A stretch of 64,000 nt of DNA from Paragordius varius. Its lineage: Eukaryota; Animalia; Nematomorpha. The position numbers were made by a program, and so were the translations under genes. Every line of letters starts with the position of its first letter. Position 1 is the first letter of the stretch. Below the pieces are notes generated by a model, which did no database searches, had not been told where the DNA came from, and saw only the letters and a list, made by a program, of their open reading frames with translations. The DNA lies in assembly GCA_964247055.1 (NCBI GenBank), contig OZ176052.1, forward strand, positions 7,316,001-7,380,000, written 5' to 3'. Below, in pieces: positions 6,625 to 58,700 of this stretch.

Positions 6625-7058
6625 TCAAACCAAATCTTTTAAAACAAATGTGATAGATGGAGCGGATGGGATAATGTTGAAAAATTTTTTGCGGGACGGT
6701 TGACCCTTCCAATCTTTATATTCATCCTGCACTCTAGGGTTATTAAAATCTGGATCAATTTTTTCGGCACTTATTACAACCCTACCTTTGCACATGGCTT
6801 TAAGAGATTTATCAACAATTTTTACCTAAAAATATTAAAGTAAATTACATTAAGCCCTGGATGAAACAAGAGATGCTGTTGGTTTGTTAACGTTTCATCT
6901 TTGTAAATTAAATCACCTTCTTTTACAAAAGGTCCTCTAATTTTCCCCTTAGTTTTACTTCGTTTATTTTTAATCACGGTACTAACATATCTTTTTCCAA
7001 AACCTATTTTATAAATTTCATAACTTGTCCCTAAATAAAAACCGAACACTTGAAGCAT
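6625..7058 (-). CDS. MRPL27: Mitochondrial ribosomal protein L27 (bL27m); start codon uncertain
   Basis: Exons 7058-6849 and 6825-6625 are joined by a 23-nt GT-AG intron (6826-6848). Product: ...KRYVS..KGKIRGPFVKEGDLIY...QQHLLFHPGLNV / KSLKAMCKGRVVISAEKIDP...KKFFNIIP..TFVLKDLV*. This matches the bL27m pattern (G.R.G..K.EG...Q.H..WHPG..V...KKFFNVIP). 136 aa as modelled. Confidence 0.85.
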
Positions 7059-7096
7059 AATGCGATCAAAACAGTTGTAAAGCACGCTTTAACCAT

Positions 7097-10000
7097 ATGT
7101 CTTGTTTATGGGGTGGACGCTTTAATCATACAACAAACCAAATTTTAAATAATTTAAATTCTTCGATCGAGATCGACAAAAAACTATGGGAATATGATAT
7201 CAAAGTAATGTGTGATATTATATAATAGGGTAGCAAATCATATGCCAATTGTTTGAAAGATGCAAACATTATAACTGAAGTAGATAATCAAAGTATTCAA
7301 ACTGGTTTGGATACTATTTTTGATGAATGGGTAAATGGAAGTTTCATTATTAAAACATCAGACGAAGACATTCATACTGCACACGAAAGGCGTTTAAAAG
7401 TTAATTTCCGAATGTAATTTACGTTGCTCGAAACAAATTTTCATCAATTCATAAAAATAATATTAAATAGATCCTTCAATAATATTGATTGGAAATAAAT
7501 CTTTTGAATAATTTTTTAGGAATTGATTGGGGCAGAGATAGGCGGCAAGTTGCATACTGGCCGTAGTCGAAACGATCAAGTAACTACGGACGTTAAATTG
7601 TACATAAATAATGTTATTGGTCCAAATTTGCTAGACTCGCTTTGCACCTTATGTTATAATTTGCTTGTGAAGGCCGAAAAACTCTTACATATTCCCGATC
7701 TCTCAGCTACTAATCCACCTGATTTAAAATTTAATGGTGACTTAAACAATACAAATAACAAAAGATTATTGATGATACCTGGATATACACATTTACAAAG
7801 AGCTCAACCCGTTTTATTTTCTCATTGGCTCCTGAGTTATGCATGGGCCTTTTATCGCGATACTGCTAAATTGGACACAATACTAAACAACCAGCCTTGG
7901 GGCTTAACTACGCTAACGTTAGGGAGCGGAGCCATTGCTGGAAACCCGTTTAACATTGATCGTCAAAGTTTGGCCGCTAACCTTGGTTTCACTCATTGTT
8001 CCATGAATAGTATGGATGCTACGGGCGACCGAGATTTTATAAGTCGGTTATTGTTTTTTTTACCTGTGTATAAAAAGCATTTAAGATAAAAATTATCATA
8101 TTAAAACGAGAATTCCTTTATATATTTGTGGGAAAATTATTTTTTTATTTCCTACCTAGGTCCTATTGGAAATGGCCTATTTATAATTGTTTTGATTTTG
8201 TATTCAATATGGAAAGCTTATCAAATAATGTTACACATTTATATGACATAAATTGACAAATGAATATTTTTATTCATTTGTATGATCATTTTTTTCATTT
8301 CCCACCCAGTTGACTTATTGTACTGGTCAGCTTTGGTTAGTGTTCACTTAAGCCGTCTTTCCGAAGATTTGATATTGTATTCTAGCAAAGAATTTGGTTA
8401 CATCGAACTAGCTCAAGAGTTATGGTAAATTATTTTGCAAAGTGCTTTTACCAAATATTATTTTAAGATTAATACATGCAAATTTTTGATGAGCCTAACT
8501 TGACATGATATATAAATATTTTTACTTTTAAAAATACTAATTTGGCTAAATGCTATTATCAAATGATTTTTAGTTTAAAATTAATCTATGCAAAGGTTTT
8601 TTTTATCTTTTTTAACTACTTAATAATAACATTTTTAATTATTATATATCACAATATTTATTCTATTTTTTTATTTTAATCATAGTATACTTAAAAAGTC
8701 CTAGTTATTTTAAAATAAATTTGATTTTTGTTAAATTCAAATAAATTAATTAATAAAATAATTATCATCACTTCCACAGTACTGGAAGCAGTTTAATGCC
8801 ACAAAAAAAGAACCCAGATTCGCTCGAAATAATCCGTGGCAAAGCGGGCACCATAATTGGTAATTGTAATGCTATGTTGATTGTTGCCAAGGGTCTCCCC
8901 TCCACCTACAACAAGGATTTACAAGATGATAAAAAATTGCTGTTTGATTCTTGTGAAACTACCGATATTTGTGCCCGACTTATGGCTGCTATCATAGATA
9001 CTTTTGAGGTATTTAATTTAATACTCTTTTTATATATTGGCTTGGGTCTGACAGGTTATGCATGCATTTATTATTGAAATCATACTCTTTATTTGGCCAA
9101 CAAAGTCCTATTGCCACCTCCCCGTGGTGTTGGCTGGGGCATGAAAATGCGCTAACGGCAAAGGCCAGTTTTCTAATGATCTGTAAAATCATTAGTTGTA
9201 CACAAGGGCATGTGATTCGTAAAAAATTGCCTCAATAAACCATGAAGTATAATAATATGAATATGAAAGAACACTAAAACCTTATCAACATCTCAAATAA
9301 CAATAATAATTTAACTTATAATAATTATTTTGATAATAATTCCTATTTACACTTTTATACACTATATTTTTTTTGATATATACTTTGAATAATAAAAATT
9401 ACCAAAATAACTATGAAAATAAATAATTCCGTTAATAATAATAATAAAACAGTTCTGAAATTTGCCACATGGAATGTCGGTACTCTAGTTAACAAAATAT
9501 TAATGGTAACAAACACTCTTAGCCATAACAATATAGATATATGTTGCATCCAAGATGCCAGAATGAAAGGAGAGGGATTGAAAAACTTAGACGATTATAC
9601 ATTGGTCTATAAAGGAAATGACAAGGTACAAGGTGGTGTTGCGATTTTCATTAAAAACATCTATCGTGATAACATAATTGATGTAATAAGACATAATCCA
9701 AGAATGATTCAAATAAAAATATTGATGAATGATAATGTAATAAATATAGTTTTAACTTACGCACCACAATCTGGTCTAAGCGAAACATCAAAAAACGAAT
9801 ATTGGGAAGGCCTCTATGATTTGATGAAAAAAACTTCTTCTAGCGAACAAACTTTTGTTGGTGGTGATTTTAATTGCCATATTAATAATGATAGTAATGA
9901 ATACCATGGCGTGCATGGTGGAAATGGCGTTGGGGCCCTCGATAAGATGGGCGAGAGTTTGCTAGACTTTTGCATTGCAAATCAACTAATAGTCGCAAAT

Positions 10001-13000
10001 ACCCATTTAAAAAAAAACCAACCAGCATATAACATATAATTCCGGTGACCACTCATCTATGATAGACTTCATATTAATTCCAAAAAACATTAGGAAACAT
10101 CTAACCATCAAAACTTACTATCAATTCTCTTACCAACACAAGCTAATAACAGCATTTCTAATCATTGAGATAATCCGTAAGACCGCATTCCAACATCAAA
10201 AAATAAATAAAGCAAAGTTAAAGGATTCAAAATTATTAACCAATTATACCAAAAACACAGAGTTACATATACCTGAACGAAACAATGTTGAAACTCTATG
10301 GAAAAATTTTAAAAGCACAATTCTAACAGCTGGAAAAAAACATTGTGGTTTTACTAAACCAATGAGGTAACGGAAAAGCTGGTGGTGGAAAAAAGAAATA
10401 AAACCATTGTTGCGTGAAAAAGGCGAAGCATATAAAAAATGGAAAAGTTCCAAAAATAATGATGATAAAAAAGTTTATGATGATAAAAAAATGAGAGGTC
10501 CAAAAGGCCATTCGACACGCTATGAATTAAAAATCCGTTAAATTCGCTGAAAGTTTAGAAAAAGACTTTAAAAACCAAACGATTTTTAAAAGACTCAAAA
10601 ACCTTAACAATAGTAATAAAGATGTTGAAACCATAAAATGTATTAAAGATGATAATGATAATATAATAACGAATCCCTCGAAAGTCAAAGAAATTTGGAA
10701 AACGAACTTAGAAAAACAACTCAACCAAGTAAACCCGACCAAACGATTTAGCATGGTTTCACCAGTAGCTGGGCCCATACAAGAAATCACCATAGATGAA
10801 GTCTCAACTGCAATCAATAAATTAAAAAGTAACAAAGCTCCAGGCCCAAGCAGCCTTTCAGTCGACCTCATTCGACCCATCAAAAACACTGCAGAGTATC
10901 TGACAAAACTCTTTAACCAAATAATAATTACAAACCAAACTCCCAGCGATTGGAAGAACAGCATAATAATCCCCATTTATAAAAATAAAGGCGATCGACT
11001 AAAAACATCGTCCTACCGACCTTTAAAACTTCTGGAACACACACTGAAAATATTCGAAAATATATTAGAAAACAGGCTGAGAAAACATATAAACATAGAT
11101 TCGAATCAGTTTGCATTCCGTCCAAACAGTAGCACAATAGATCCCTTGTTTATCCTAAGACGCTTACAAGAAAAATATCTGGAAAAGAAACAAAAGCTAT
11201 ACCATGTCTTTGTAGATCTGGAACGTGCGTTTGGCCAAATACCACGCACCGTAATTCAATGGGCACTACGTAAAAAGGGAATAGAAGAACAAACTATACA
11301 AATTTTATTACTACTCTATAAAAATACAACAACCAACGTTAAAACCAATATTGGCAATACAAACAATTTCCCAACAAACGCTGGACTACATCAGGGTTCA
11401 GTCCTAAGTCCACTCCTTTTTATAACTATAATGGATGCGGCAACGCAAGACATAAGAAGTGAATGCCCTTGGGAAATGTTATTCGCCGACGACCTCGTGA
11501 TAATGACACGATCATGGGATCAACTGGTAAATACATATTCCAAGTGGAAGAAATGCCTTGAACAATATGGAATGATCATAAACGCCACAAAAACAAAAAT
11601 AATGATAACGGGTGAAAGTGAAACGCCCAGATACCCCTGTTCAGTAAGGAAGTCAAATTCCATTAAATGCATATCATGTCAAATGTGGGTACACAAAAAG
11701 TGCTCTAAAATAAAAGAAAAGTTAACAAATGTAATAAATTTTAAATGTTTAAATTGCTTAGACCCAAGCAATAATAATTTTAATCGACCAAAGCTACTTA
11801 ACATTGATGGACATGACATCGAATTGGTTGACTCTTTCGTATACCTAGGAGATGTCATTACATCTCAGGGAGGCCCACAAAAGGCTATCAAAAGAAGAAT
11901 ACAACAAGGTTGGATAAAATATAATCAGTTAAAATATGTTTTCCAAAACAAAAATGTTAACAATCGTAATAAATGGTATCTTTACAAGGTAGGAATAAGA
12001 CCTGCTCTTACCTATGGTTCTGAAACCTGGGCATTAAACAAAACAAATCAAACAAAACTCCTAACCAGTGAGAACCGAATACTCAAAAGCTGCTTTCGCA
12101 CACCAGAATTACCAATTTTCATTAAACAAACCGATAAAATCGATTATATAATTCAAACTAACAGATTGCGTCTATACGGTCATACTCAGAGAAGAGACGC
12201 CACCCATCCGTTAAAAACTGTTGAAAACATTAATGTTGATGGCAATAGAAGAAAGGGACGACCACTCTTTTCTTATAATGATAATATAAAAATGGACATG
12301 AATCAAAGTAGCCTTTCCACAGAACAATGTAAAGATCGTAACTTATGGAGGAAACTACTTTGTGGATACAAAACTCCGAATATGGAGTCCTAAAATTATC
12401 CATCCATACTCTTTATTTAAGTCCATTTTTCTGCATGCCCTTGCAAACGAGCCTTACATGAATGTATTTAGAAAGTATTTATAACCACTTTGGGCTTTTG
12501 AGTCCGCTGTAACTTTTATTGGTCCTACAACCTAGAAAATTGACTTAGTAAGCTAACGAATTTTTTTCCGCCACCAAAACTAAAAATTATAAAAGTCCTT
12601 CCCGTTGATTATCATTAGTGTTGATTTGTAAAAGAGGTTAGTACGCTAAAACTTTCATAAAATGATTATATTCGGCGTAGCAACATATAGGGTTAATATC
12701 TACCGCCATAGAATTTTTTGGGTTGCACTGCGCGCTTTAAATTAGTTACTAAATATCGATTAAATAAATAATGGTATAAACTTTATTTTAATTTTAAAAA
12801 TTGTTAATTTAATATCTAATCATCATTCATTTTTAACCTATTAAAGTTTATTTATTGACTATTTTGTTTAGCAACATATATATGCATATTTTAATTGCCT
12901 TGGTATGACTATGAGATAAGACCTAACCCATATCTACTGTTTTTGTCATTAGATTTGGATAATACAATGTTTGGGCTTACATTTTTATACAGGTGGTTTT

Positions 13001-15755
13001 TTTTTCAATATAAGCGCAGAATATCAATACTATTGTCAATTATTTTCTGAAGCCAATTATGTCGTATTGTTTTGTTTATGATCATTACTTTAATGCATTG
13101 ATTCTTATTTGGTTCCCCCCTTTAACTCTTTTGATAATCTCTCGGTGAAGTATTCAACAATTTTCCTTTGCGTCAAAAAATATATATTTCCAATTAATAA
13201 AGGTGTTATGCAAATCTGAAAGATACTTTATTTTTATATCATAATATTCTGTGTTATATGCAAATGTGAAATACATACCTTGGTTATATATCATTACTTT
13301 CACCGTTATTTGAATTGTATTATTTTCTATATTTTTTGTGTAATATGTAAATATTATAACCTTTGTTACTTAAAATTTTATTGATATAATGCAAATTATG
13401 TACAACTAAAATTACTATATAAACCCTAAAAAAACCAAATAAAGAATTCAGTTCATTTCACATTTCTTATATTATCTCCTCCTTTATCTTATAACATTGG
13501 TGGCAATTCGAGTACCGAACTAATCTAACAACTAATCTAACACAACAGTGGAACCTCCGGGTTCCAAACTCGGATGGTGGAGATAGAGTCCAAAGTGCAA
13601 CAACCATGACAATGTCAATTGCCAATATCACCAGCATGTCCATGAAAAAATATAATGATAATACCATTTATAGCAATGGTAATAATTTTAATCGATCACA
13701 ACAATCAAAACCTCGGACACATTCGCGCAAGGATTATGGGAGTGTTCATAAACAAATGTCCCGCCTGGAACCGCAATTGCAAATGCGGAAAACCCAACCA
13801 CTTCGCTAATGTAGATCAAAAAAACACTGCCAAAAATATGTTCAACCGCCAGTGCACTGAAAGCGAACGGGTAAGAATCTATAGCAACTTTGGAATCATT
13901 ATCAACAAATGGCTGGGGAGGACTCCCACATCATTCAACATTTGATGGATGGGTAAGTAAGATTGGCGCGGACAAGCTTGTAATAAGATTGATCGGTAAG
14001 ACGCCTACCTCCCCAGGCCGAGCTAAAGCTACACCCTCGACGATTTCAACAATAAGAGGATGTGTCAGTTACAAAAAGGACACAGTTAAGATTCTGACAC
14101 ATCCTCTTATTGTTGAAATCGTCGAGGGTGTAGCTTTAGCTCGGCCTGGGGAGGTAGGCGCTGGACCAGTTTAAAAGAAATGGTCTAGGGTGGCATGAGG
14201 CAGAGATCAAATGAAACACGTCGACACACATAACATAGGATGTTATCTTTCAAACCAAGATTCGTCGACACACCGCCTACTTAACGACACCGGTCACTCA
14301 AAAAAGTAGTAAGGATAACATTAATAGCAATAATGACAATATCAATGTAAATCCGCACGAGCGTCGTTACCCCGAGAGAATTCGGCGGAAGCCGGTCCGG
14401 TTCTCTTAAGGGGGAAGTGATGTTATGCAAATCTGAAAGATACTTTATTTTTATATCATAATATTCTGTGTTATATGCAAATGTGAAATACATACCTTGG
14501 TTATATATCATTACTTTCACCGTTATTTGAATTGTATTATTTTCTATATTTTTTGTGTAATATGTAAATATTATAACCTTTGTTACTTAAAATTTTATTG
14601 ATATAATGCAAATTATGTACAACTAAAATTACTATATAAACCCTAAAAAAACCAAATAAAGAATTCAGTTCATTTCACATTTCTTATATTATCTCCTCCT
14701 TTATCTTATAACAAAAGGTTAATTACGAAGCCTGTCAAAAAGCATTGTCCCCTGATATGTTAGCCACTGATATAGCCTATTATCTTGTGCGAAAAGGCGT
14801 AAATATTTTTGTTTTTATTTTTTATTTGCTTTTTTAGAAACATTCATTTTTTGTCGTTTTTAGGTTCCTTTCAGAGATGCTCATCATTGCGCTGGTAAAG
14901 TAGTAAGTTATGCGGAATCGATAAATAGTCCATTAGATAAACTTAAGCTTGAAGATTATAAAAGAATTAGGTATGTATTGGTTTTTTTGCATTTTAAATA
15001 TCATAAGCGTTTAAATGGGTTTTTTGAAACATTTACATGAATATTATGGGATTTGTTAATGATGAAAGTGAAATTTATTATCGAGTATCCTACCCAATAT
15101 TAGTAGTATATTTTTTGAGATAATTATATTTGCATATATATTTCATCTAATTTAAGCCGAAAAAAACTAAAAATTAATTTTATTTATTTTGTAGTTAGTA
15201 TGTCATATATAAAGTAACGAAGGTTAAATTCGTCGAGAGATAAAAAATCAATTTAAAAAGAGATACTTTATATATATATATTATAATTTGGGGGAGACGC
15301 AAACTTTTAGATACAGTGAAAAAATCATGGTTAGCAAACGCTATGTAAGTATTAATTTATGCGAAAAACAAAATGCGCCAAATAGTTGTTTATCAGTATT
15401 GTTGTCTTATTAAAAAGGAGTTAAGTGCCTAAATTTTTTAAAATTTATTTAGATTGATAATTTGCATGTAAAATGGATAAAAATATACAATGTAACTCCA
15501 TTTATATTTAGTTTTTGAGGTTACCTAATATCGGCGTTTTAAATTAATTAAGCGCTTTGTCAAATTTCATAAATGTGATCATATAAGTACTTATTGATAT
15601 ATTATAGCCCCCAATTTGATGCTGACATTTTGGACATATGGGATTATGAGAGGAGTGTAGAACAATACACTGCAATTGGCGGGACAAGTTCACAAAATGT
15701 TAAATTGCAAATCGATTATCTCAAATCATGGCTACGAAAATATCTTAAAATATAA
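7097..15755 (+). CDS. ASL: Argininosuccinate lyase, 8 exons, 493 aa
   Basis: join(7097-7204,7229-7399,7520-8042,8310-8424,8780-9008,14718-14798,14864-14970,15608-15755). All junctions are GT-AG and phase-compatible. Motifs: [47 protein letters not shown], signature [47 protein letters not shown]. Confidence 0.95.
9095..12404 (+). mobile_element. Full-length RTE-like LINE (APE + RT, with a Cys-rich finger inside RT) in ASL intron 5; ORF disrupted
   Basis: 14-bp TSD CATACTCTTTATTT at 9081-9094 and 12405-12418. APE motifs: [23 protein letters not shown] motifs: [28 protein letters not shown]. The C4/PHD-like segment reads CISC..WVHKKC..FKCLNC. The 3' tail is ATCCATCC. Lesions include a frameshift in the A9 run near 10010 and a stop at 10368-10370. 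Confidence 0.92.
13204..14713 (+). mobile_element. Young non-autonomous 1510-bp Gypsy/Mag-derived LTR element (TRIM-like)
   Basis: Two 293-bp TG...CA LTRs (13204-13496, 14421-14713) appear identical by eye. 5-bp TSD AAAGG at 13199-13203 and 14714-14718; PBS TGGTGGCA at 13498; PPT AAGGGGGAAG just before the 3' LTR. The 924-bp interior has a gag zinc-knuckle remnant ([19 protein letters not shown]) and an integrase-tail remnant ([12 protein letters not shown]). Confidence 0.95.
14002..14160. repeat. Perfect 67-bp inverted repeat with 25-nt loop inside the LTR element
   Basis: 14002-14068 (CGCCTACC...GTGTCAG) is the exact reverse complement of 14094-14160 (CTGACAC...GGTAGGCG). Confidence 0.95.
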
Positions 15756-25026: not shown

Positions 25027-25520
25027 ATGAATAGCGAACTTGATCATTTTTTGCCTGAAACAGATTTATCGGTTAGTAAAATCTTTTACATTTAGGCTGA
25101 AAAAAAATATTTTGATGAACTAAAAAAAGGGCAACCTTCAATGATAACTCAATTTAATTATTGTAACTCATTAATTTTGTCCAATGAATTTCAAAAGGTT
25201 CAAATGGCCTCTCATCTTCTTGAAGGTACATTTCTTTAATTTTAGAACTCTATATTATTTACAATAATTCTGATTACCATGTTAAAATTTTGATCTCTTT
25301 GATTATTTCATTTTATAAACTAAAAGTATAAATTTAATTTTATGTTAAGCACAACAAAAAATCTATTCACTATTATGAGATGTTGCACGATAAATCGGAT
25401 AAAAAAGTTATTGAACATTATCTTACACAAAAAGAGGATATATACAAAAAATTAACTATTTTCAACACTATAATTACTGCAAGTATAATTCTGATAGGAT
25501 ATGCAATCAAGCGATTTTAA
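25027..25520 (+). CDS. FIS1: Mitochondrial fission 1 protein (Fis1)-like, 141 aa, 4 exons; absent from the ORF track
   Basis: join(25027-25071,25096-25225,25246-25325,25350-25520), with introns of 24, 20 and 24 nt. Product: MNSELDHFLPETDLS / AEKKYFDELKKGQPSMITQFNYCNSLILS...ASHLLE / ELY...LIISFYKLK / ...LTIFNTIITASIILIGYAIKRF*. It resembles Fis1 (EKK..E..G..S..TQF.Y...L..S.....LLE...YxLK) and ends in a tail-anchor TM segment plus basic tail. Confidence 0.8.
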
Positions 25521-26870
25521 TATTTATATATCGTAATAAATATTTATACATTATCTACCATAGTATTAATAAAACAAGCAATTTTAAAAATATACCGCAA
25601 TTTTTTTTGAAACTGGCAGTATTTCGTTTGAAATATTTTTGTAATGAAACTGGAATAAATACGACTCTTCTAATGGAAAATGTTCTGTTAATTCATTCTT
25701 TGTTTAGTTTAGACTTAGAATTTTTTATTATAAATTAGTTTAAGAAAACATTAAGGTCTGTATTATTTTTTTATAATTTATAATTATTAAAAACCCGTGG
25801 TTAAAACTAATTTATTTTGATTTTAACATATTGAACTAGTTACATGATTATAAGATTATTTTTAATTAAATCAATTTACATTGTGAAAAGTTAATTGCCC
25901 CTTAAGATTGAATGAATACGTTTAGGTTATTATACAATAACATGCGTCATATTAACAAATAAAAAGGTGTTACTAAATATATGTCCTTAACCCTTCAAAT
26001 AATATTATATTTAAAAGATTTTATCAACGTAAATAATAAAGAATTTTAACTGAATCAAAACACAATTTATAATAACGCTTATTGATGCTAAAGATAGCGA
26101 AGCAATTTGAAACGGGGTATTTGCTTTAAAAGATTTGGTATAGCATTTGATATAGATATGTAATCAACTAAATAATACCTTTTAATATTTTACCTTTTTT
26201 TATTGGGAAACATCCCATAATTTCATTCTTAATTTAGGATAAATACGGTTCTTGCATAAGCTTTAAATTATTTTAGCTTATTTTGAAAATCTATATATTT
26301 ACCATAAATATTGTAATAATATAACAGATAATTTATTACATATGGTATATATATGTATGTATTGACAATAAGAATCAATTAATTTAGTAAATTATAAAGC
26401 AATAAAAAATGTTTTTTTTTCAAAAGCGTGAGTAAAAAAATATAAAAAGGCGAAATATAGTGCTAAAATACTGATAGAAAGGACGGTAAAGAATTTACAT
26501 ATCACATTGTAAATGAATGATTTGTTGATTAAACGTTAAAGCTGTATCAATAAGTTAGTTGCATAGAAATTTTGGTGGATTACATATAAATATATCTGGG
26601 TTTGTCAAAACCTATTTTAGAAGGATAAAACAAAAAGGCATTTAGTTTTTGGTAGGCGCGAAAATGTAGGACGAATTTCGTAAAATAAATAAACCATGAT
26701 TAAATTTGTAATTTCATATACATCGTATAAAATGATTGAAAACTAAAGTCTTATATAGTAATAAAACAGAGCAAAAAAACAAATATATAAGTAAGTATTT
26801 TCGGAAAACGCAAAAAATTTAAAGAATGTCCATCTACAAAACCATACATACATAACTTATAAGATATCAT

Positions 26871-29800
26871 CTATAAATCAGTTTCGCCATATAAAGCCGC
26901 AGAAAATGAATGGTAATCCAGGTATATAGTCGTGCTTGTAGTTATATGATTTGAAATATTTAGCTGAGAAATTGGAGAAAATCGGGTCGGAGACAATGTG
27001 GAGGAAGAATTATTTAATCCGATAGTATTGGCAGATTGGGGTGTTGAACGGCCCCCACCACCATTTAACGTTGGGACAGTTCCCTTATAAGTATTCATGC
27101 GTTTGATACAGTATTCAGCATATTCGGATGGGAGTTCACGTCTCAACTCATCGATCGTTATGTAAGGCTAATTATTTACATAAGTTGAAATTATACGGAC
27201 AAAAACGTAAAAATACGAATACCGCTGTATTTTTTAAAACCTTAGTTTTATCCTATTAAATTAATTTAACCATTCATTATGTTACCAATGTACATCTATT
27301 TTATGCCAGTTTAAACCAATGAGTCATATTTGAAGTATGGTTGTCTTTTAGAAAATAATATCTCTATATTTTTTCATTTTTTCCGTATAATTTGCAATTT
27401 GCGTATATATAAAAAGAATAAAATGGCAAAATAAATTAGTTTTATATATGTCTGTAATGGATTTTAAGGATAATTATGTTAAACTTAATAATAAATGTAT
27501 GAATGTTTGATAATGCCGGGCTTGTAACCATGACCATTAAAATATGCCTTGTTTATAAATGTATTATAAAACAGTTCAAATTAATTGAAAAAGATCCTGA
27601 TCCTAATTACACCTTTCGTTACCAGGTTAACCAATAAAATATTTCATATAAAGCATTCAAAATGTAACCTTATCTCCTGCGAGCGTTTTGAATGAAGCTA
27701 TAATTTGATCGGAAGTATCTAGATCAGTATTTTCACGCGTCATAAAATCCAAAAATGATTCAAATGTAACCTGACCCGTGTTGTTAGGATCAACGACGCT
27801 CATTATACGTTTAAAATCCGCATCACCCTAAAAATATCGAATAATATGAATTATAAATAATCATCATTATTGAATGGATTAACACATAAAAATGGTTAAT
27901 TAAAAGAATAAAAATACTTGTTTATCCTCACGAATACTGTAGCCCAGAGAAATGAGGCAGGATTTAAAATCTTTGGGATCCAAAATACCGGTATGATTTT
28001 TGTCAAAATGCGTGAATGACATTTTAAATTCGTTAAGCTGATCTTGACTAATACCCTTAGAGTCACGGGTTAAAATCTGCAAAAAATATAAGATTTAAAA
28101 TTTTGCATATTCATGATAAAGCCAAAAAGCTCAAAAATCAACCTGGTTTTCAACTTCATTGATATGACGAGATAAAGCTGTTTGAAGTTGTTCCCAACCA
28201 ACTCGGATAGTTTCCATTGTGTATCGGGTATAAGGATTTTCAAATATTAATGCCTCTTGTAATTCCTATTTATCAATATAGTTATATCGTGAAGAAAATA
28301 ATTATTAAAGTCTTCGAAATAAATTTTTGGAATGATATTTGTATATTCTATGGTTATAAAGTGTTAAGATATCAGTTATTAATAATATAATTTTGCGTTT
28401 TATAGTTATAATTCGGAGTAAACAACTACTAACGTTAAATAATTGGTGTTTCATTTTTAAAATAGAACCCGACTTTTTTTACAATGTTTAGAAGTAAAGG
28501 TTAAATATATCGTTAAAACCAACCGGTTTCTTATAGAAGAGTGATCTTAAAAAATGGTGATATAAGGGTTTTTAATAAAAAAATTGGCACAAAATATGTT
28601 GGCGGCCTCTAAAATTATTCAAAGATAAATGGTGCAGCCACTCAAATTGTTTTAGTACTTCATTATATTTTTCCAACTCATCCATATGAGGTTTATAATG
28701 GGCGACAGCAGTTTGGACACTATGTAAACGATTCAATTGTTCTTCCAATGAGCTAAAACAATAAGTTTATTTATATTATATATTACAATTACCAAAAAAA
28801 TACAATGAAATATCATACTTGCTATGTCCAGATTGTTGTTTTGGCATCAATGATAAATTATGATATAAAAAATAAAGATATATTTTATACAATGTCTATA
28901 TAATCTTAATTTTTTAATAGTCATATTAACATCAAGAGTGTCCTTCACTTCAAGTTGGTCCTTAAACACTTCAAGTTGGTCCTTGAACATCAAGTTGGTC
29001 CTCGAACATCAAGTTGGTCCTTGAACACTTCAAATGGTCCTTGAACATTTCAAGTTGGTCTTTCAACTTTTTTATTCTTTTTATTTTATAAATCAAACCG
29101 TGTATCATTCATATATTTTATTATTTTAACATCTTAATTTAACCAAACTTTTAAATCAATATCACAGAAACCGTACATCTTTAATAAGTTCATAAAATAC
29201 ATTAATGTTAATAAGATATAAACATGTAATTTTAAAAAATATATGTTTTCTGGGTTATTAAATACAATTTTTCGTTGTCTACATTTATTATATAATTTTG
29301 TTGAATTAATAGTTTGAAACTAAAAATTCGTAAAAAATATTTTAAATAAATATATAAGAAATCAATTAGGTTAAAAAAATAATGAAATTCATGGAAAAAT
29401 TATGGTTAAACTTAAAAAATTTAAGGATCAGCTTGAAAAATTTAAGGACCAACTTGAAGTGTTTAAATACCAACTTGAAGTGTTAAAAGACCAATTTGAA
29501 ATGTTCAAAAACCAACTTGATGTCAAGAACACTCTTGAAGTACAAATGGTATATTGCGTAAAACTAAGATTTAAAAAAGCATCCACTTTCAAAAACTTAA
29601 AAGAATGCCGGAAGTAAAAAAGTATGTGATTCTTAAGATATGCATTCCATACCTATGCGTTTGTAGAGCTATATTAGTTACAGTATCAAGTTGACCCTCG
29701 ACCCAGGGTCCAACCACGTTAGCCTTTTCGGCAAATTGATGTCTCAATCTTTGATGCGATTGTTGTTTTAACAACTCTTTCTGCAATGTGGCATCGCGTA

Positions 29801-32800: not shown

Positions 32801-35800
32801 TATTGGTTAGAAAGTATAAAAAATCATTATTAATTTACATGCTTTAAGTATAAAAAATTAATATATTTTAGTATTTGGTAATGGTTAGATTCAAAATATA
32901 ATTTATGAGAAATAACCGAAAATTCGTATCAACTTAAAATGACATTTCTGTATTAGTGTAATTAAATTATGTATGTGATTATTTATAAAATTAAAAAAAT
33001 GGTAAAATGTTTACATGCTTCAGTATTAATTAAAAAAAATTTAGTTAGTAATCTGTAAAACAAGCAAAAAAGCAAACTTTTTTAGCACCAGCAAAGGCAT
33101 GATAGTAGGAAGAAACGTAAGTCATAACAGCTTTTTCATCCATTCTTAATGAATTGACAATATCTATATCCCATGGTAAAAAATGTATGTTAAGACAAAA
33201 AATGCATTTTTTAGCTAATGGTTAAGTGGTTATTTTAATTTAGTATAAAATCTTACATCAAAAAAGTGAATCAGAATTTTTAATTTTTGCGGTAAAAAAT
33301 TAAAATATACAGAGTCATAAAAAGTCAAAGATTTTTTCGAATCTTATATAATTACAATCACCCCATATTCGTATTCATAAGGGATATAAAGAACATAATA
33401 AGGATCAAAATATATGGCGGTTTTAAAAAAAAAACTCTTTTGTTTTTTATATTTACACCGTATCTCCAATTTTTCTATATATAAAACAAACACGCGTGAA
33501 GCCATTATGCTAAAACAAAAAACCCATTTAGTTAAACTGCATAATAAAAACCTTGTGTGTCAATATTTGAGTCACTGCTATTTCATGCTAAAACTTATTC
33601 TATATTAAATATATTTAGTTTTCATGCTGGTTAGGTATTATCTGTTAGAGGAGGTTTTTAATATTAGCTTAATGTAGATAAAAAACTTTATGGCCCGTTG
33701 AAAAGGCGTGATAAAAACACGAGACATAAGTCATTATTGCTTTATCGTCAGGTTTTGGCATATTCATTATATCTGTGTAAAAAATTAATTTCCAAAAATA
33801 ATATGTTTATTAATTATTTTAAACACTGTTTAAACAGGGTTATTGTGAGAAAATAATTATGAAGATACCTTCGGGATCCAACATCTTAGGTATATCCAAA
33901 TGTTTTTCGGCAATATCAAATGCCATGTTCAAATTTGTCCATGGGTCATCCTATTGTGAAAATAAAAAAAATATAATTATATCAATTACATTTTCTTATA
34001 GATTTTGAACATTCTAAAATCTGAAAAGGGGGGTAGCTTAATTACAAGCAAAACCAATAATCCTAATTATTAATATGTCTCACTTCTCTAAAACATAGAA
34101 CAGCATAAATTTTTGTTAATTTATAAAAAAGATAATTTGAATTGAAAAAAGAAAAAATGCCTCATTTGTTAATAAAAAAGGAAACATTTTCGATAATGTT
34201 ATACTTTAATGTATTAATCCTTAAACATTTTTAGGAGAACAAAAATTTTAGAATATTAGATATAGGTCATCTAAATACTTTACCAATAATTTACAAGCAA
34301 ATTTTAATCCCTTCAAAAGTGCGACCCCAAATTTTTGCAAGATAAGCATCCTAATATTTGATTTTTTTCCGACTTGGAAATTATAATGTAATTTTATTAA
34401 CCCCAAGAAAAGCTTTAATATATATTAAAGTAATGTTTCATAGCCTTAACTTGATATTTCAGTTAGCTGGCCGTATAAATAAATATAAGCCAGTGTACAC
34501 TTTTTTTTTAAAAAAAATATCTTATAACCGATCTATTAACTTTAGTCCTATCCAAAGTTGACAAAAATAAGTAAAAACTATGAGATATATATATTTTTAT
34601 AATTAATAAATTAATCAATCTGATATACCTTGGAAAGTTTGTTGTAATCAATTAATTCCGGTCTATGGCGATGTATTAAGGCACAGAACGCTAAACCATC
34701 TTTAAAGCTACAACATTTATAAATAAATTTTCAAGTTATGCGTACGATGCTATATTATATATATATTGTGTATCAAAAAAGTTTTTTTAAACATTACTCT
34801 TTTTGATTCTATTTATTTCTCAATGCATAAATATATATAACTTAATCAATGGTATGATAAATTTTTTTACAAAAAATTATATTATTTGAAAAGTGGATTA
34901 AATAATAAAATTGTGTATGAAATTAAACATGTTTAATTTTAGCAGGCCATTTAAAAATTAATACTAATTAACACAGCCTTTTGAAAATTTAGGTTCAAAA
35001 GTATATTAAAGGGTAGTTAATCCATATATAATTTTACCTTAAATGGAAGTTCTGGACATTGACATTTTTGTAAGGCGCTGTTTTACGTTGACACCAAAGC
35101 AATAAACCATCTTTTGCAGTCATTTCTAAGTTTAAAAAATAAAATTGTTGAATTAATCAATAAATCATACGACAAATGTTTAAAATTAATTAAATGCATA
35201 TTCATAAATTTTTATATTTATAAATAAAATTTTGTAATTTTTAAAATTAATCAATATTTTAAATGAGTGGGGAGTGTGGGGGTTAAAAACCTTCCATTGT
35301 TATGTCTTGTATGGCAAAACGTAGAATAATGGTCCAAATCATACCCAACGTCATTTTCAAATTCCCGTCAACAATTTCTACCAATGCATGTAAAATATGT
35401 CATATAAAAGTTCAATAAGAATTTAATACATGAATGCCAGAAAAATAAAAATATACAAAATTACAATTATAGGTGATATACAGTATAATTAATAATACAT
35501 TGCTAGTTTTTCCCAAATATTTCCTAATGGCATATTTAGCGAGGATAATTATTATTGGCTAATATAGCAGTAAAAAAGCGAAAAATATAACTTACGCCAA
35601 CATAAATACCCTGTGCTGTTTATGCTATCTGGCAAAAAATAATGAAAAAAAAAAACAAGCAATATATACAAACATACACTGTATATTTGTAATATAATTT
35701 CTTTTAGTTGACAAAAATCATAAAATAATTAAATTCTACCTTCAGCACCAATGGAGACAAGTTTAACGCCCTTCATTTCTATGAATTTAAGGGCCTTATT

Positions 35801-38800
35801 AACGTTAGCAATTTTGTGGAAACGCATTTTACCCCTATCGGGTTTGGGTAATTGTTCGCCCGAAATAACTTCAAGCAAGAGCATGAGTTTAAGTCCATTC
35901 CTAAAATCCTCTTCGATATTATCAATTTGTGTGCCAGCTTTGCGTAAATGTGAGTTACACCAAGCCGTAAAGGTCTAATTTTATAATGTTAGTATAATAA
36001 AAAATGTGGAAAAAATTAATTAAGTTAGTTTAATTTAACATTAATTATAACTTTATTAATAAAATAATAATTGGCATTTAGTTAAATTAAAAGACAACTC
36101 CAAATAAAACATTTTTTTATTGAAATATTTCAAGATTTAAGGAAGTGGGCAGAACATTGAATAATTTTAATCTCGATTTAAAGATAATCTTTATCTTAAT
36201 TTTAAAATTTTTACACGAAAATAATTAATTTCGGAAGCCCTCGCATTTTTTTTAGTTTATTAAATCTGAGATAAACTGAGGAGTAATTCACAACATTCAT
36301 TGTAAAAACCATATTGATCATAAAAAAATAAGTTTAAGGAGTTTGAAAAGATATATCTGCAATCATACGATGCGGTTCCTAAGTTTTTTGTTCAAAGATT
36401 GAATAAATTTGTAACTTATATATATTAATTATTTGATGAAACAGATACAAGATATCTGCCTTAAAACGATATTCAATCCCATTTTATATAGCATGTTATA
36501 ATTAATTAAAATATCTGTTTTGCTTTAAAAGTTTTGAAAAAGCGGCAAAAAATCTGTTTTCAAGATTTTACAGATCAGATTTAAATTAAAACATGTTTTC
36601 TTCCTTTATATAGAGAAAAAAATAACTTAATATAAATGTTGAATATAATAATTGCGATTTATAAGTTAAACATCGGAATATGTATTTAAAATTGAAAAAA
36701 CCAAAAAATTTAGTAAAGTAGCATATAGATTTTTCAACACAACAACATATTTTGAGTGCTGATAAAAAAAGAGTTATGATAAAAATATTTATAAAATACG
36801 TATTTTTGTTTCTCTAAACACCCCCTCATGGCCCCAACTGTGGGTGATTATTCAGGCTAATAACCGCATCATGACCCTTTTTTTTTGAATTATAGATTAT
36901 TTTAAACTTATTTTCCTATTTTAATATTCGGTTATATTACAATATTTTAATATGGTTCTAAAAATATTTTTTAATTTTAATTTGTCTACCATTTTTGGAT
37001 CGTTATGAGGGTTTCTCAAGGCCGACAAACTTGAAAAGTATACTTATTTAGGACGATTATAACTTAAAAACTAATAGCTTATTCAAAAAATTTAAAAAGT
37101 GCATGATGATCAACCTATCCTATTAGTTTATTAGGCGCTGTTTATGTTAAAAAAACTTATTATAAAGGGGTGGGGGTAATTATAGGGGGGGTATATGCGT
37201 TAAATCAGTGATACTCAAACCACGGCCCTAAAAGTGCTTAATCATGACGACCCTATATTATTTATAGTTTTTTACTTAATTTGAGTATAATGTTTGCTAG
37301 TGTATCAAACAGATATGAATTTTTAACAGTATTATATGGATAAATATTTTTTGCGACCCTAAATTATTTATAGTTTTTTTGGTGAATACCATTGCATTAA
37401 ATAGGCTTAAATGATATAGTATGGATATATAACATAGGTTTACACGGCTGACACATATGGCAATATAGTTAGAAGCGAAACGACGGGCCCACGGTTCAAA
37501 AGGAGTTATTATTTTTGCATTACGTTTTTAATTTTCGGCACCGTTTTTTGGCCAGGGGATTTTGCATATCAGATTACAATTAAGAAGAAGCGAAATAAGA
37601 AACTATATCATCCTATACATTTTTATTTACAACGGTCGGTAATTTTTCGGGTAAAACCTTAAAATTCTTAAAAATTGATGTATACCATTTCCCAGTCTAA
37701 ATAAACGTTTTCCCAGTCAATCGAAACATTTTCCCAATCAATCGAAACGTTTTCCCAGTCAATCGAAACATTTTCCCAGTCAATCGAAACGTTTTCCCAG
37801 TCAATAGAAACATTTTCCCAGTCAATAAAAACATTTTCCCAATCAATAAAAACGTTTTCCCAATCAATAAAAACGTTTTCCCAGTCAATAAAAACGGTTT
37901 TATTTTTGATGATAAATATCAAAACAAGAATATAAAAACACCTTTTAACCATTATTAGCGTAATATTAGGATATAATTTTTTATAAAAACACAATTATTG
38001 AATGACAATTTTTCCAAGTATATTCCTGTGCACAATCATTAATAATTTATTCTTTAAATATTATATTTTTGGAATTTGAGTTAAGATAATATTTTTTATT
38101 TTATCGATAGTCCGCATTAATATTTGCGGAACGCTTCAGAATAGTTTTTAAATATCTCCGGTTTGTCGATAAATATACTGTCGGAAAAAAATCTTAACGA
38201 AAATTTTTTTGATAAAAATGTTTTTGAGCTAAAAATATTTAATAAAAAGGATATTTTACTAAAACAAGGGTGTCCAACTAAATGCTTTCGCGGGCCGCAT
38301 CTTTAACTCAAAAAGCACACGGTTTTCCATTCGAAATATATACGGGCATTCACATAATTTTATAAGACTGCAAAATACAAACACAATATAACAATTTTTT
38401 ACCAATTTAATAGACCCATTCATAATAATACGTAAGAAATATGATTATTACTAAGATTTTGTGGGCATATTTTTGCATATGGTTTTCCAAATTTTTCGCG
38501 GGCCGCACAAAGATTATCAGAAGGCAGCGTTGGGCCTCCAATGAAATAAATTATAAATATTAAAAAAACTTGGCGTAAAGTTTATGTTTAGATCCAATAA
38601 AGTGTTAAATGACTTTGTGATAAAAATGGTATATTTTTATAAATTTTATTATTTAATCCGTAAGTATGATTTTATATTTCAGCCGCATATATAAATGCGT
38701 ATATAAAATAAAAAATATTATCTTAACTCAAATTCCAAAAATATAATATTTAAAGAATAAATCATTAATGATTGTGCACAGGAATATACTTGGAAAAATT

Positions 38801-41721
38801 GTCATTCAATAATTAAGTTTTTATAAAAAATTATATCCTAATATTACGCTAATAATGGTTAAAAGGTGTTTTTATATTCTTGTTTTGATATTTATCATCA
38901 AAAATAAAACCGTTTTTATTGACTGGGAAAACGTTTCGATTGATTGGGAAAATGTTTCGATTGACTGGGAAAACGTTTATTTAGACTGGGAAATGGTATA
39001 ACATTACAATAGTTAAAAACAATTTGTACGATATAATTTAATTTTTTAACATATGTTTTGAATATATAATTATATGGATTAGTTATAGTGAGTTAGAGAG
39101 GAAGAGAGATGGGCAATTCGTATTTTGCATTTCGCATAACAAAACTGTTGAGTAAATATACAACAAATGGTACAATTTAAAATAAAAACAAAAAATAAAT
39201 TTTTGAAATTACGAAAATATTGAAAATGTATATATGAAATCACGATTGCCTTGACTTTAAAAAATTTAAAGTCTGCATTCTTACATATTATAAAATAGAC
39301 GAATATGTGAATGATTAATTTGTATTGATTTGCAACATATAGCTAATTAAACGCGTAATACTCATAATTCCTTTCAAAGTCCATCGCTTGAAACAAAAGA
39401 TTGAAAATTGGAACTTTCGCGTTATACCGTAAAAAGTCATATTATTTGTTAAAGAGATTTTATAAATTGATGGATGCATTAGAATATCTAAATGTGTCTA
39501 TAATTAAAAAAAATATTTTTATTCGAATATTAATTAAATATTTTATCCATTATAATCTTTAATAACCAATACTGTTGTTGGTTATATCTTTTTAAATTGA
39601 TAGTATCCAACCAAGATAGGTAGGTATCTTTGGGTAGCGTTTTAAATCTGCAAGTAAATTAGAGTTTATCAATATATTTTTAAGTTTATCGGCGATATTC
39701 AAAACTTCTTTTTTTATCCCTAAAAATCTTAATGTGACCAAATTTAAAACTTTTCAGTCATATAGTTTTACAAAGATGCCTGTAAATTGTAGATATTTAT
39801 GCCAATGTTTTCCAAGTTATTACATAGGTATTTAAATGATAATGAAAATTAAATAGCATACAAATTCAATAATAATAACAATAATAATGATAGAATGATT
39901 CATAAAGTATAATAAATACACCAGCAGTAAATATTTGCAATTGTCAATTATGTCAGGACAATGCAATTTAATAAATACATAAAATATAAACACAAGAAAC
40001 ATTTAAAAATATTATTAGATGTATGGAATGTGCTTGAATAAAGGAATTTCATAAATATCTATCCATATTTATTTAAAGGATACATTCATTTTACAATGAA
40101 TTATATGTATATAATTGTTTAAGTTAGCTATCTACCTTTTATAAACTTACAATATAAATATTTAAAGTGTAAAATATTTGAACATTTTTTTTAACAAATT
40201 TGTATTGTTATTGTCAAATTACTATACCATAGAATTGACTCTTATAAATTGAAAGTTTTTTAAGGTGTATATTTATAATTTTAACAAGTCTGGAGTACAA
40301 AAATTAAATTTACATTTTATTTATCCAAGAACAATGGAAACAATTAAGATTTTATAAGATGAATATGTTTGTTATAAATGATATCTAAAAAATATAATGT
40401 GTCAAATATTGGTAAACTCAAGTACAATAAAGAATAGGTTTATGGATAAAATTTGGAAAATAAACATATTTGTAAAAATCGGAGCTGATTAAAATATTTT
40501 GATTTTTATTGAATAATATTGGTTGATAAGAAGATTGAAACATTAAATGAATTTCAATTATATTTTTGACAAAAAACGTGTCTTACGTGTTAAAATTATC
40601 GCAAAAGCTTAGTTCCAATAAATTTAAGCTAAATATGCAAGATGGTTTATAATTAAAATTAGTTAATTGTAGCCAATATTTAGAAAAATCTCATCAATAC
40701 CTTGCAAACATACTTTGCTGCAACAAAAATATTTCCACCCCCAAATTATATATAATAAATATAAACAAATAATTTTGAAAGACAAAAAAAAGACCTTTAT
40801 GATAAGTATGCATACTTTATAAATTACTAAGAGTTGCTGGATTACAGCCAAAAGACTTCAAATCACAAACATATAAGGTAAATATAACATGCGATTACAT
40901 ACAAAAGTAGCATATGTATGTTTAGTAAATTCAATGTTTTGATATCTTTATAAAGGGAAAAGTTATCAAATCAGCTTACCCATTATATTAGATAAAATGT
41001 TTAAGTTTATGCTTCATTTGGTTGCAAATAAATTAAAACGTTTCAGATTGGCAAATCAATTTAAAAAACAATTAAAACTTCTTTATGAATAAAAATGGAA
41101 TCACTAATTATATTAATTACTTATAAGCTTTAAATAAAAATTTTAAATCATAAAGATTAGGTATTTATTTTTTAATATTTGAAAATCATGTTTCAAAACG
41201 TGAATTATTTCATTTGGCAAATAAATATATATCCTTTACCTTGTACTTTTAAAACTATTATTTAAAGCTTAAATAAAGAACGGATTTTACAATAATAAAA
41301 CAATGATCTTTTAACTACGATTATGAAACAAATGCGCTCTATTGACCATACATTTAACATAAGAATTATGAGTTGAAATTTGAAAATAATTAAATAGCTG
41401 CAGGCTTTAATACAGAAAAAATAATGAACAAAATATGTAATAACTGAAATTTTAATTAATTTAATCTTATTAACAAAAAGATAACAATGATTAAAAGAAT
41501 TGAAAAGATACAAATGTTTTTACGTTCAAAAGTTTTTAATTGGTTAAATAAATAATTCCTTTTTTAATATTAATTTTAAGGAAAATCTAAGATTATTAAA
41601 TAAATATTTATATTAGTACTTTTCTTTGCTGTTTTTCCCAAGCAGGATCTAATAGTCCTTCCCGTTCCCACTCTTCTTCCGGCTCCATATAATGATTTTC
41701 ATAATGATTATTATGATTCAT
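26871..41721 (-). CDS. ACTN: Alpha-actinin, 21 coding exons per isoform, 989 aa
   Basis: Exons: 41721-41620, 35974-35740, 35377-35291, 35125-35038, 34707-34629, 33950-33869, [33772-33687 or 33163-33078], 32780-32629, 32509-32236, 31998-31838, 31575-31482, 31402-31311, 31113-31005, 30893-30753, 30413-30249, 29843-29653, 28752-28659, 28265-28143, 28076-27918, 27827-27669, 27167-26871. All GT-AG and phase-consistent. Domains: CH1/CH2 ([26 protein letters not shown]), four spectrin repeats and EF hands, ending YGETDL*. Confidence 0.96.
28929..29541. mobile_element. Foldback/MITE-like element with arms built of ~21-bp subrepeats, in an alpha-actinin intron
   Basis: Left arm (~28929-29070) has CACTTCAAGTTGGTCCTTGAA-type units. 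Right arm (~29407-29541) has the reverse-complement units around an AT-rich spacer. TSD not resolved. Confidence 0.7.
33078..33163 (-). CDS. ACTN: Alpha-actinin CH2 mutually exclusive exon, Ser variant
   Basis: 86-nt exon, phase 1 to 0, (D)[28 protein letters not shown], flanked by AG and GT. Confidence 0.9.
33687..33772 (-). CDS. ACTN: Alpha-actinin CH2 mutually exclusive exon, Cys variant
   Basis: 86-nt exon, phase 1 to 0, (D)[28 protein letters not shown], flanked by AG and GT. Confidence 0.9.
37681..38999. mobile_element. Foldback element with long TIRs containing 21-bp tandem subrepeats (alpha-actinin intron 1)
   Basis: 37681-38104 (424 bp) is the inverted copy of 38703-38999 (297 bp). 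The ~126-bp difference equals six extra TTTTCCCAGTCAATCGAAACA-type units on the left. The spacer carries hAT-like motifs (CAAGGGTGTCCAAC, two GCGGGCCGCA). Confidence 0.88.
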
Positions 41722-54144: not shown

Positions 54145-54239
54145 GTCTACCGGTTTAAAACTGAGACGCCATACAGAAATGGCGTGGTTTTGGAGCTGAT
54201 TAAAAAACTAAAAAGCCATACGAGTTCAATTAAACACAT

Positions 54240-55280: not shown

Positions 55281-55527
55281 TAAAACTTTTAACCATGATT
55301 TCGTAAAACGAGAACCATAAATTAAATCCAATGATAGTTGAATATTAACTTTAATACAGGACAGTTTGAATATTGTTAGTTTCGAGTAAACAATGTTTGA
55401 GCCTATGTAAAAACCCGTAAAAGAATAATTTAAGACATTTTTTTTATTAAATATGTTTTTTATTATTTTATCTCCATTACTTCATATTATTGCAAATTGT
55501 AAATAATAATTATCGATGAGATTACAT

Positions 55528-55556
55528 CACAGCGAAGCGTGACAGGGCCAGCTAGT
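55528..55556 (+). mobile_element. Candidate Helitron 3' terminus
   Basis: Short GC hairpin CACAGCGAAGCGTG followed about 10 nt later by CTAG then T; no 5' end identified. Confidence 0.35.
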
Positions 55557-55752
55557 AACATTATAAATATGAATATTTAATGGTATTTATCAATACAACT
55601 AAATGCCCTGATTAATACATTACGGCCAATTGATTAAATAATAAATGAAATATCTAACAGATCTAAAATTTATTTTTCAAATAAATAATTTAATTTTTTT
55701 AAATATATTAAAGGTTTTATATTAATAGGATATATTATCCAATCATAAAAAT

Positions 55753-58700
55753 TCAAGATTTCATTTTCAATAACATAATTCGCAATTCTATAAATTCTTC
55801 AATATCCTTTTTCATATCTTGGCTAAACACCTAAAAATTTAAATTAATTAACATACCCTATTCCCAATCAAATTTTGTAGTCCATAGTACCATACGTTAT
55901 ACTAAATAATAATATATTAAAAAGAAAATATATAACCTACGGAAATTCCGTAAGATAGTGTAAAATTGAAATAAATATTAATGCATTCAGAGTATTATAT
56001 GAATCACTTCATCATTAGTAATCGCAGACCTTTTTGGTGCTTATTAGCACTCATCAGGATTCAAAAACCATTTAACTTGGTTTCACATATCATTTTGTAA
56101 TATATTCAACTTGAAATCTTTGATAATGCAGTCGGTAATACAAAATACTCAATATTTATAAACGAAAAAAATGAGAAAATTTAAATTCTAATTTTGAGTA
56201 AACCAATAAAATTTAAAAAATTTTGAGAGAACAACGGGGTAAAGCTGAGAACCGAAACCGGTTCAGATTCGTTAATTAAATTCTGGTCTAAAGTCACCAT
56301 GATAATATTTTTATTTGTGGCTGAAAAATACAGATGTGGGATTTAGATTTTTAAACCAAATTCTCTTACCAAATATCACCGATGGAATCATGAATTTAAT
56401 TAATATAAAAAATTATTAAATTTATCCATTGATTTGATCTTCAATTATTTCATACAATATTAAAGTAAAACAATAATTATGTTAAAAATTCATTAACTAA
56501 AAAACTAGCTAAAAAACTTACACTATGTTCATCAGGAGCTAACAATGAAAGTGAACCCCCTATTGTGTTAAAATCTTCGGATGATCCCCGCAAGTATAAC
56601 GAGTTTGATGATATGGGCTAAAAAATTTATTTAAGCGAAATAATTTAATCATTATAATAAAATAAATATTGCAATAAATATTTTGACTTTTCAATTCCTC
56701 TAAGCTTAAATCATTGAATTCTTCAATACATTTTGGGTTAGTATAACCAGTGGCAATTTTATATTAGAATCTTTTTCAAAATGATATTAGGCGAAATTTA
56801 AAATAAAACAATTTTTGGCCTTATAAGCGCCCTTATTTTAACTTGAACATTTAGCCATATTTTATACTTTATTTTTTAAGAAAATTGTTAAAAATATAAA
56901 TAATTAAAATTAGGTGCATATAATTAAAACTTAACAGAAACAAACTATCCTAATACGAAAAAATAAAATAATTTATTGAAGTGAATACTTTTTTCTGTGG
57001 CTTCTGCATAGGTGATGAATCCAAGGGACCTGTGGATATTTTGTTAGTGCTAATATCGAGATTTATATTTTTGATCATTACTATATAATAATTAATAATA
57101 TTAGACTAAGTACAGTAAAGAGCATGTATGCCGTTTTTATTCTCAATGATATATGTAAATGTATGTGAGTAAGAATGAATTATTTTTGTTTTAATTTGTT
57201 AACCCTATGTACAATTCAAAAAAGAAAAAATATGACTTTATATGTGTATAAAAAAATTTTAATTTTTAAAAGATTCCAATAACCATAACTTAAGCTAATT
57301 TCATGAAACTGTATAGTTAAAATTTATTTCATGCTGAATTGAACAAATATTGAATTCTTATACATTACTTATATTAACATTCTTGTGAACTATTCTGGCT
57401 GGATCCTGATGATCACAAAAAGTGTACATAAGAAATGTCTTATCGTTAGATAATTGGAGACAACAGTAACGATCTGTATCATAAAAATATTATTATATGC
57501 ACAGGTTCAAAAAGGTGGCAATATATAGCAACTAGAAGTGACATGCTATATAAACTGGGAATTACATATAATCTGATAATCAGCCTTGTGTCACTTTCGT
57601 AACAGTTTCTCATTCTTATTTATTTGAATCTAAAAAATACTATCCTAAATTTGGATTTATATAGATTAAATAAACACCGTTGTAAAAATAAATCAATAAA
57701 ACTACTCGATTCTAGCCTTGAATACTATTTTTTATATAACAACTACCATTATTGCTGCATCAATTAATGAATAAATGCGCGACATTAGAAAGATTTAGCT
57801 AATAATGATTTTTTAAGCATTTCTAATAGAGAATGGACCATTTAAATTTTATGTACAATTGTATTTCCACAAAGCATATATGTCAATCAACATGCGGCGC
57901 TTATAATAATTTGTGGCAAAATGACTTTAAACCTTTAATTCTTTGACTATTCTTTTGGGGTTGGTTTAGAAAAAACGTGCCTTGACACATAATATTCCAC
58001 CGGTTTTCCAAAACCATGTCTTCGACTTCCGGTAAAAAATTATTGTAAATCTCCCTTTATAACACAGTATATATGATACAAAAAAGATAATATTTATTTA
58101 ATTATTTAAAACAGGGGTCGACCTAGGGCTGGCTTGCCAAAACATTTAGAAAAATTAAAAAAAAATTTAATTAAAGTTTAGCCATAAGCGAGCCGAAACG
58201 CGCATGTATTGTTAAGAATAATTTTTTTCCATTATACACTATTATATTGACATAGAGTACTATTTTTATTATATTTTCAAACATGGGGCTCGTCTAAAAT
58301 CTTAACTGTTCATCTCCAAAAAAGGTTTCCAACCCCTGATTTAAAAATATTGCTAAATATCAGTTGATTGTGGGTCCGATTTAATTGCTAAACATTATGA
58401 CTGATGTGAATTTAAGTCAGTAAGATAGTAAGACGGTAAGACAGAAAGATAGTAAGACGGTAAGACAGTAAGACAGTAAGCATAAGACAGTAAAATATTT
58501 GTATAAAAAACATACATTCGTGATAAGTCTGCTAATAGGAGACTTAGGTGTTGCAATTAAAAGAAGAAGAACGTGATCCAGATATACTAAGAGAGGAGGT
58601 TGAATTAGCCTTAAAACAAATTCCTAACAACAAAGCGATGGGATTAGACAATATCCCAATAGAGTTCATAAAAGCTATTCCCGTTGAAAAGTTACACCAG

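Follow-up and report, generated by a model that had tools for sequence, protein, structure and literature searches.

Results

The DNA analysed here, referred to as the window, is a 64,000-nt stretch of the Paragordius varius genome that is AT-rich and repeat-rich, with a GC content of 22–35%. It contains genes for argininosuccinate lyase (ASL) and alpha-actinin, together with MRPL27-like, FIS1-like and ELMO-like genes. Within all of these except alpha-actinin lie six segments of 20–26 nt that an earlier note, made from the sequence, had described as GT-AG introns. Their coordinates, lengths and strands match that description, and all six begin with GT and end with AG on the coding strand (Table 1). 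Judging from the reading frames, they are very probably obligatory spliceosomal micro-introns, situated beside introns of normal and kilobase length.

Table 1. Genes and micro-introns of the window.
Feature	Position	Strand	Description
ASL gene	7097..15755	+	8 exons, 493 aa; introns of 24, 120, 267, 355, 5709, 65 and 637 nt
ASL intron 1	7205..7228	+	24 nt, phase 0, with stops in frame; position ancestral, occurring also in crab and sea anemone
MRPL27-like gene	6625..7058	-	exons 7058-6849 and 6825-6625, 136 aa; weak PDB match
MRPL27 sole coding intron	6826..6848	-	23 nt, phase 0; last residue of exon 1 follows bL27m 79
FIS1-like gene	25027..25520	+	4 exons, 141 aa; exon 2 matches Fis1_TPR_N clusters
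FIS1 intron 1	25072..25095	+	24 nt, phase 0, after codon 15; in-frame stop at its end
FIS1 intron 2	25226..25245	+	20 nt, phase 1; sole frame-restoring GT..AG pair within 60 nt; seen in DNA runs X3 and X5
FIS1 intron 3	25326..25349	+	24 nt, phase 0; second codon is an in-frame stop; seen in DNA runs X3 and X5
ELMO-like gene, last two exons	55753..55901	-	55901-55857 and 55830-55753
ELMO-like gene, last intron	55831..55856	-	26 nt, phase 0; gene identity from presumed resemblance
Alpha-actinin gene (comparison set)	26871..41721	-	22 exons, with one alternative exon in duplicate; 21 introns (66-5645 nt), none of them a micro-intron

With all six segments removed, the frames of ASL, FIS1, MRPL27 and the 3′ end of ELMO are open through the terminal stop (the joined, spliced models were translated only as a check of frame). 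Retention of any single segment introduces a stop 1–9 codons from the junction, and the three 24-nt segments, which are multiples of three, each carry an in-frame stop, in line with the earlier claim that retention is not viable. A GT..AG pair of the required length occurs no more than 4 nt from a given site at ~1.6% of window positions, and the product over six sites is ~1.5e-11. Under a lax rule (15–35 nt, right frame, within 6 nt) the frequency is ~13% per site and the product ~5e-6; neither product takes account of the sites having been picked by eye after reading, and we regard the margin as large. The U12-type 5′ site RTATCCTT and branch site CCTTAAC are present in none of the six segments. 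Their sequence, together with the absence of structure (folding energies between 0 and −1.7 kcal/mol), rules out U12-type, tRNA-type or self-splicing introns.

ASL intron 1 is the strongest of the six cases. The ASL exons match Pfam Lyase_1 and ASL_C2 as well as animal ASL proteins, and exons 1 and 2 abut, with zero residues between them, in 70 of the 74 full-length homologues that align to both exon ends, so the intervening 24 nt are non-coding. Since an intron occupies the same codon boundary in the crab Chionoecetes opilio (287 nt) and the sea anemone Exaiptasia (11,017 nt), ASL intron 1 appears to be an old intron that shrank. The other six ASL introns all lie at positions common to mite, weevil or fish, and the length of the largest, intron 5, is due to a long interspersed nuclear element (LINE) plus a second element whose two terminal repeats of 293 nt are identical.

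Several further features of this locus were recorded. The element with the identical 293-nt direct repeats (13204-14713) ends 4 nt before ASL exon 6 and is a recent long terminal repeat (LTR)-like insertion at the acceptor. Just upstream of the LINE, also in intron 5, is a hepatitis delta virus (HDV)-like ribozyme (9095-9164, + strand), which matches Rfam drz-agam-1 with 38.9 bits and so exceeds the gathering score; RTE-type retrotransposons are known to carry HDV-like ribozymes at their 5′ ends. ASL exon 3 (7520-8042, + strand) carries an insertion of ~20 aa before the MIPGYTH motif relative to most homologues. The predicted starts of MRPL27 (7058, − strand) and ASL (7097, + strand) are head to head and 38 nt apart, so either the 5′ untranslated regions overlap or are tiny, or one start differs.

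For FIS1, MRPL27 and ELMO the homology searches, which were run exon by exon, had lowered sensitivity. The top Atlas matches of FIS1 exon 2 are Fis1_TPR_N clusters (0.94, 185 shared features), with a recognition value slightly under the tool's threshold. MRPL27 exon 1 has four PDB matches at E ≤ 10, all to bL27m and all weak (E 0.4–1.1), ending at residue 79–80; a homologue search with the same exon returned none. PDB and Pfam gave no match for FIS1 exons 2–4 or MRPL27 exon 2, nor for any ELMO exon, and Atlas was uninformative for one ELMO exon. The name ELMO reflects what we take to be a resemblance, which no tool confirmed, and this is the weakest of the four genes. The three FIS1 intron positions and the MRPL27 position presumably match those of human, a lead only. 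Removal of the six segments restores open frames; on the side of homology the case is firm for ASL and partial for both FIS1 and MRPL27, and ELMO is unconfirmed.

Sequencing runs provide a separate view of the loci. Runs X1, X3 and X5, from two studies, are genomic, with coverage that is continuous across introns and rules out an RNA origin. FIS1 introns 2 and 3 are together spanned by a single contig in X3 (25195-25532, gap-free) and by another in X5 (25122-25452, with two gap letters). Because they are carried by independent DNA runs, these two introns are not assembly errors. The FIS1 differences listed for other alleles, four amino-acid changes and one silent change, introduce no stop.

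Our intron sample is small, comprising 34 introns from five genes in one window, and is dominated by alpha-actinin, which is well conserved in animals (exon 2 agrees with human ACTN2 at 70 of 78 residues). Lengths are 20, 23, 24, 24, 24 and 26 nt, then 65 to 900 nt, plus two introns of 5.6–5.7 kb (maximum 5709 nt), with a median of 250 nt. The range of 27–64 nt is empty in this window and a two-component length fit beats a single component (Bayesian information criterion 120 vs 126), in agreement with the bimodal sample that the earlier note had described. Micro-introns also cluster by gene, with 0 of 21 introns in alpha-actinin against 6 of 13 in the others (p=0.0013). They are 90% AT inside, compared with 79% for long introns; five of six start with GTA, and five of six end in TAG after a T run. 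An A at position −8 is present in five of six micro-introns and 9 of 28 long introns (p=0.06), and a TTAAT-like motif shows a weak trend toward micro-introns (p=0.06–0.07). The composition, the GTA start and the A at −8 resemble what is described for myxobolids and Dicyema (PMC13644364). The two size classes match U1 equally well (5.5 against 5.4 of 9; p=0.85). A branch-like YTRAY motif, found in four of six micro-introns, is not above shuffles (p=0.15). A search of the 64-kb window for small nuclear RNA (snRNA) genes or splicing factors found none.

These data bear on whether genuine micro-introns might be excised by a dedicated mode, distinct from that for long introns, through a special factor such as an SPF45/RBM17- or Smu1/RED-like adaptor or through variant U1, U2 or U6 snRNAs. 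The empty length range with its two-class fit, the clustering by gene, and the weak trends in the A at −8 and the TTAAT-like motif would all be expected if such a mode existed. However, 5′-site strength does not differ between classes, the branch motif does not rise above shuffled sequence, and in myxobolids long and short introns use the same signals with conserved U2 and U2AF (PMC13644364), so that we consider a dedicated mode unlikely.

The lineage from which the window derives was approached through homologues. No nematomorph ASL, MRPL27 or actinin was present among the matches; with ASL exon 3 as query, no relative exceeded 49% over the exon length, and actinin exon 9 retrieved a single fragment, from an anonymous metagenome. 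The searches yielded no close relative for any gene. A mite affinity in a fast ASL tree vanished under a site-heterogeneous model and is rejected; the latter model left the ASL exon-3 sequence of the window unplaced. The low GC and high repeat content of the window resemble those of Gordionus (26.9% GC, 64% repeats). In a myxobolid or dicyemid genome a median intron below 30 nt would be expected; the median over the 34 introns of this one window, 250 nt, lies above that value.

Discussion

Our analysis makes it likely that the six segments are constitutively removed U2-type introns, that old introns shrank to a floor of ~20 nt as others grew by transposon insertion, and that one spliceosome serves both sizes. 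That at least five of the six are spliced as drawn can be held with high confidence. Because no RNA of the organism was found, we infer splicing of the micro-introns. Deletion would have cut old introns down to the ~20-nt floor, as the position of ASL intron 1 indicates and as we suppose for the other five; transposon insertion would have enlarged other introns of the same genes, as the LINE and LTR-like element illustrate for ASL intron 5. A single spliceosome is favoured because the signals of the two classes are alike and both classes occur in one transcript. It would rely on minimal signals, namely GT(A), an A ~8 nt before the end that probably marks the branch region, and a short stretch of T preceding AG.

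How such short introns might be accommodated can be considered in the light of human splicing, in which the 15-nm separation of the extended U6 and U2 helices within the B complex makes ~50 nt necessary from 5′ site to branch, and a distance of 46 nt leads to failure (PMC6692369). Because an intron of 20–26 nt offers at most ~18 nt for this distance, a human-type B complex could not form on it unchanged, and the spliceosome of this animal must tolerate another geometry. Shortened U6/5′-site and U2/branch helices, or sequential contacts with the two ends, would most likely provide it through a general loosening and not a separate pathway. The earlier note had proposed a modified spliceosome or a second mode of recognition: relaxed geometry can soundly be inferred from the human data (PMC6692369), whereas the second mode finds no counterpart in the U1 and branch-motif comparisons. 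A bolder proposal is that the hairworm, as the first ecdysozoan case, has evolved a separate 20–26 nt class, for which its major spliceosome would work in a remodelled or second mode, in transcripts that retain ordinary, kilobase and alternatively spliced introns; we find this doubtful, and nothing in the present data points to a new splicing mechanism.

Several observations weigh against constitutive removal of six shrunken introns. At four sites (MRPL27, FIS1 introns 1 and 3, and ELMO) a longer GT..AG pair, of 44–89 nt, would also preserve the frame, and its use would remove 7–21 codons. An ELMO-like exon near 56770-56760 (− strand) has no in-frame entry through a canonical acceptor, possibly because of a one-base assembly error, a non-canonical site or a broken allele. 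FIS1 and MRPL27 are highly diverged. No intron is present at the ASL intron 1 position at two mite or mite-like loci, in weevil or in fish, and the comparison of intron positions with orthologues, proposed in the earlier note, covers only this one of the six introns, where crab and Exaiptasia agree. None of the RNA runs on record contains the FIS1 stretch; in the RNA-like run X6, a contig from a diverged organism represents spliced alpha-actinin, without model introns 19 and 20, and FIS1 is not covered. X6 shares its species label with the best-matching DNA run and matches only short, diverged pieces of alpha-actinin (27135-27980), and the label may cover different or cryptic species.

Two alternatives draw on these points. 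The first is that some sites use ordinary introns of 44–89 nt through an alternative GT or AG, leaving fewer than six true micro-introns, as the frame-preserving pairs at four sites would permit. No such pair exists within 60 nt at FIS1 intron 2; every frame-preserving solution at ASL intron 1 is 24 or 48 nt, and the homologues demand no deletion there; and the 86-nt alternative at MRPL27 deletes an HPG motif that aligns to bL27m. We therefore regard a contribution from longer introns as very unlikely. The second holds that the loci are pseudogenes, or that the segments are assembly errors or small insertions with chance GT..AG ends. It could account for the divergence of FIS1 and MRPL27, for the one ELMO junction that fails to fit, and for the listed FIS1 allelic differences, which are mostly amino-acid changes. 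Set against it are the six-site chance of 5e-6 to 1e-11, the otherwise intact frames, the conserved ASL position and the recovery of segments in three independent DNA runs, which make it the least probable of the explanations considered.

Introns of this size are not new to animals. The earlier note had placed them mainly in ciliates, nucleomorphs and a few reduced parasites, but they are already published for dicyemids (PMC6543705). Of 51 animals, Hadjez et al. (2026) show introns shorter than 30 nt for myxobolid myxozoans and Dicyema japonicum alone; the donors there are GTa, weak A's precede AG, and both U2 and U2AF are conserved (PMC13644364). Nor is their presence in a transposon-rich genome surprising, as had been suggested, given that Myxobolus rasmusseni combines a median intron of 22 nt with a 174.6-Mb genome of 68% repeats (PMC11557904).

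The myxobolids (Henneguya salminicola, Thelohanellus kitauei, M. rasmusseni and M. honghuensis) resemble the present case in having GT-AG introns of 20–27 nt at conserved positions, a 5′ signal reduced to GTa and a weak A stretch before AG (PMC13644364); short introns of Henneguya also have short neighbours, and M. rasmusseni is likewise repeat-rich. In contrast, ultra-short introns set the myxobolid median (22–27 nt), whereas here they are a minority, six of 34, beside introns of 5.7 kb, and the lineage is probably different. Dicyemids (D. japonicum and Dicyema sp.; PMC6736024, PMC6543705) share the size range, a conserved exon-intron structure and a repeat-rich genome (49%), but in Dicyema introns average 38 nt, two thirds are below 30 nt, and the genome is 67.5 Mb with 36.7% GC, while most introns in the more AT-rich window exceed 64 nt. 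The ciliate Stentor coeruleus, with introns of 15–16 nt (PMC9505925), is similarly AT-rich, shows the GTA start, has a proposed canonical snRNA pairing and poses the same steric problem of a tight lariat; it has only tiny introns, unlike the ASL transcript with its introns of 24 and 5709 nt. Human introns that depend on Smu1/RED or SPF45/RBM17 also receive special handling of a short distance between 5′ site and branch (PMC6692369; bioRxiv 10.1101/784868), although those introns are ~56–100 nt long and human splicing fails at a distance of 46 nt, far above the ≤18 nt available here.

If the sequence is nematomorph, it would represent a third independent animal origin of sub-30-nt introns, once more in a parasitic animal, in keeping with the prediction of Hadjez et al. 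Our literature search found no report of tiny introns in Nematomorpha, and two nematomorph genome papers are silent on introns. The window contributes six micro-introns and one conserved position. With introns of 24 nt and 5.7 kb in one gene, this species could reveal how the human limit of ~50 nt between 5′ site and branch is bypassed, a question common to all tiny-intron lineages, and if the dual-mode proposal were true it would offer a naturally occurring animal spliceosome with two modes and internal controls. Such introns would escape gene finders that set a minimum intron length, as the earlier note warned; default gene finders and read mappers would pass over FIS1-like genes, and some claims of gene loss in such parasites may need to be re-checked.

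Other Features of the Window

The alpha-actinin gene used for comparison has several features of its own. Two 86-nt versions of one exon (33772-33687 and 33163-33078, − strand) appear to be mutually exclusive, because either gives an open frame of 989 aa; we take the pair to resemble exon 8a/8b of other animals. Low-complexity insertions are present in the last exon (27167-26871, − strand; ~50 aa, rich in Ser, Thr and Asn) and in exon 9 (32509-32236, − strand). Short intronic repeats at 28930-29110, 29430-29530 and 27150-27350 have very high read depth, which suggests that they belong to high-copy genomic families. When ten open reading frames (ORFs) of the window were looked up in a protein collection, none was present. 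An intronless ORF of 248 aa at 3139-3885 (+ strand), absent from the protein collection and with no Pfam match, has a hydrophobic N-terminus and several cysteines and is possibly a lineage-specific secreted protein.

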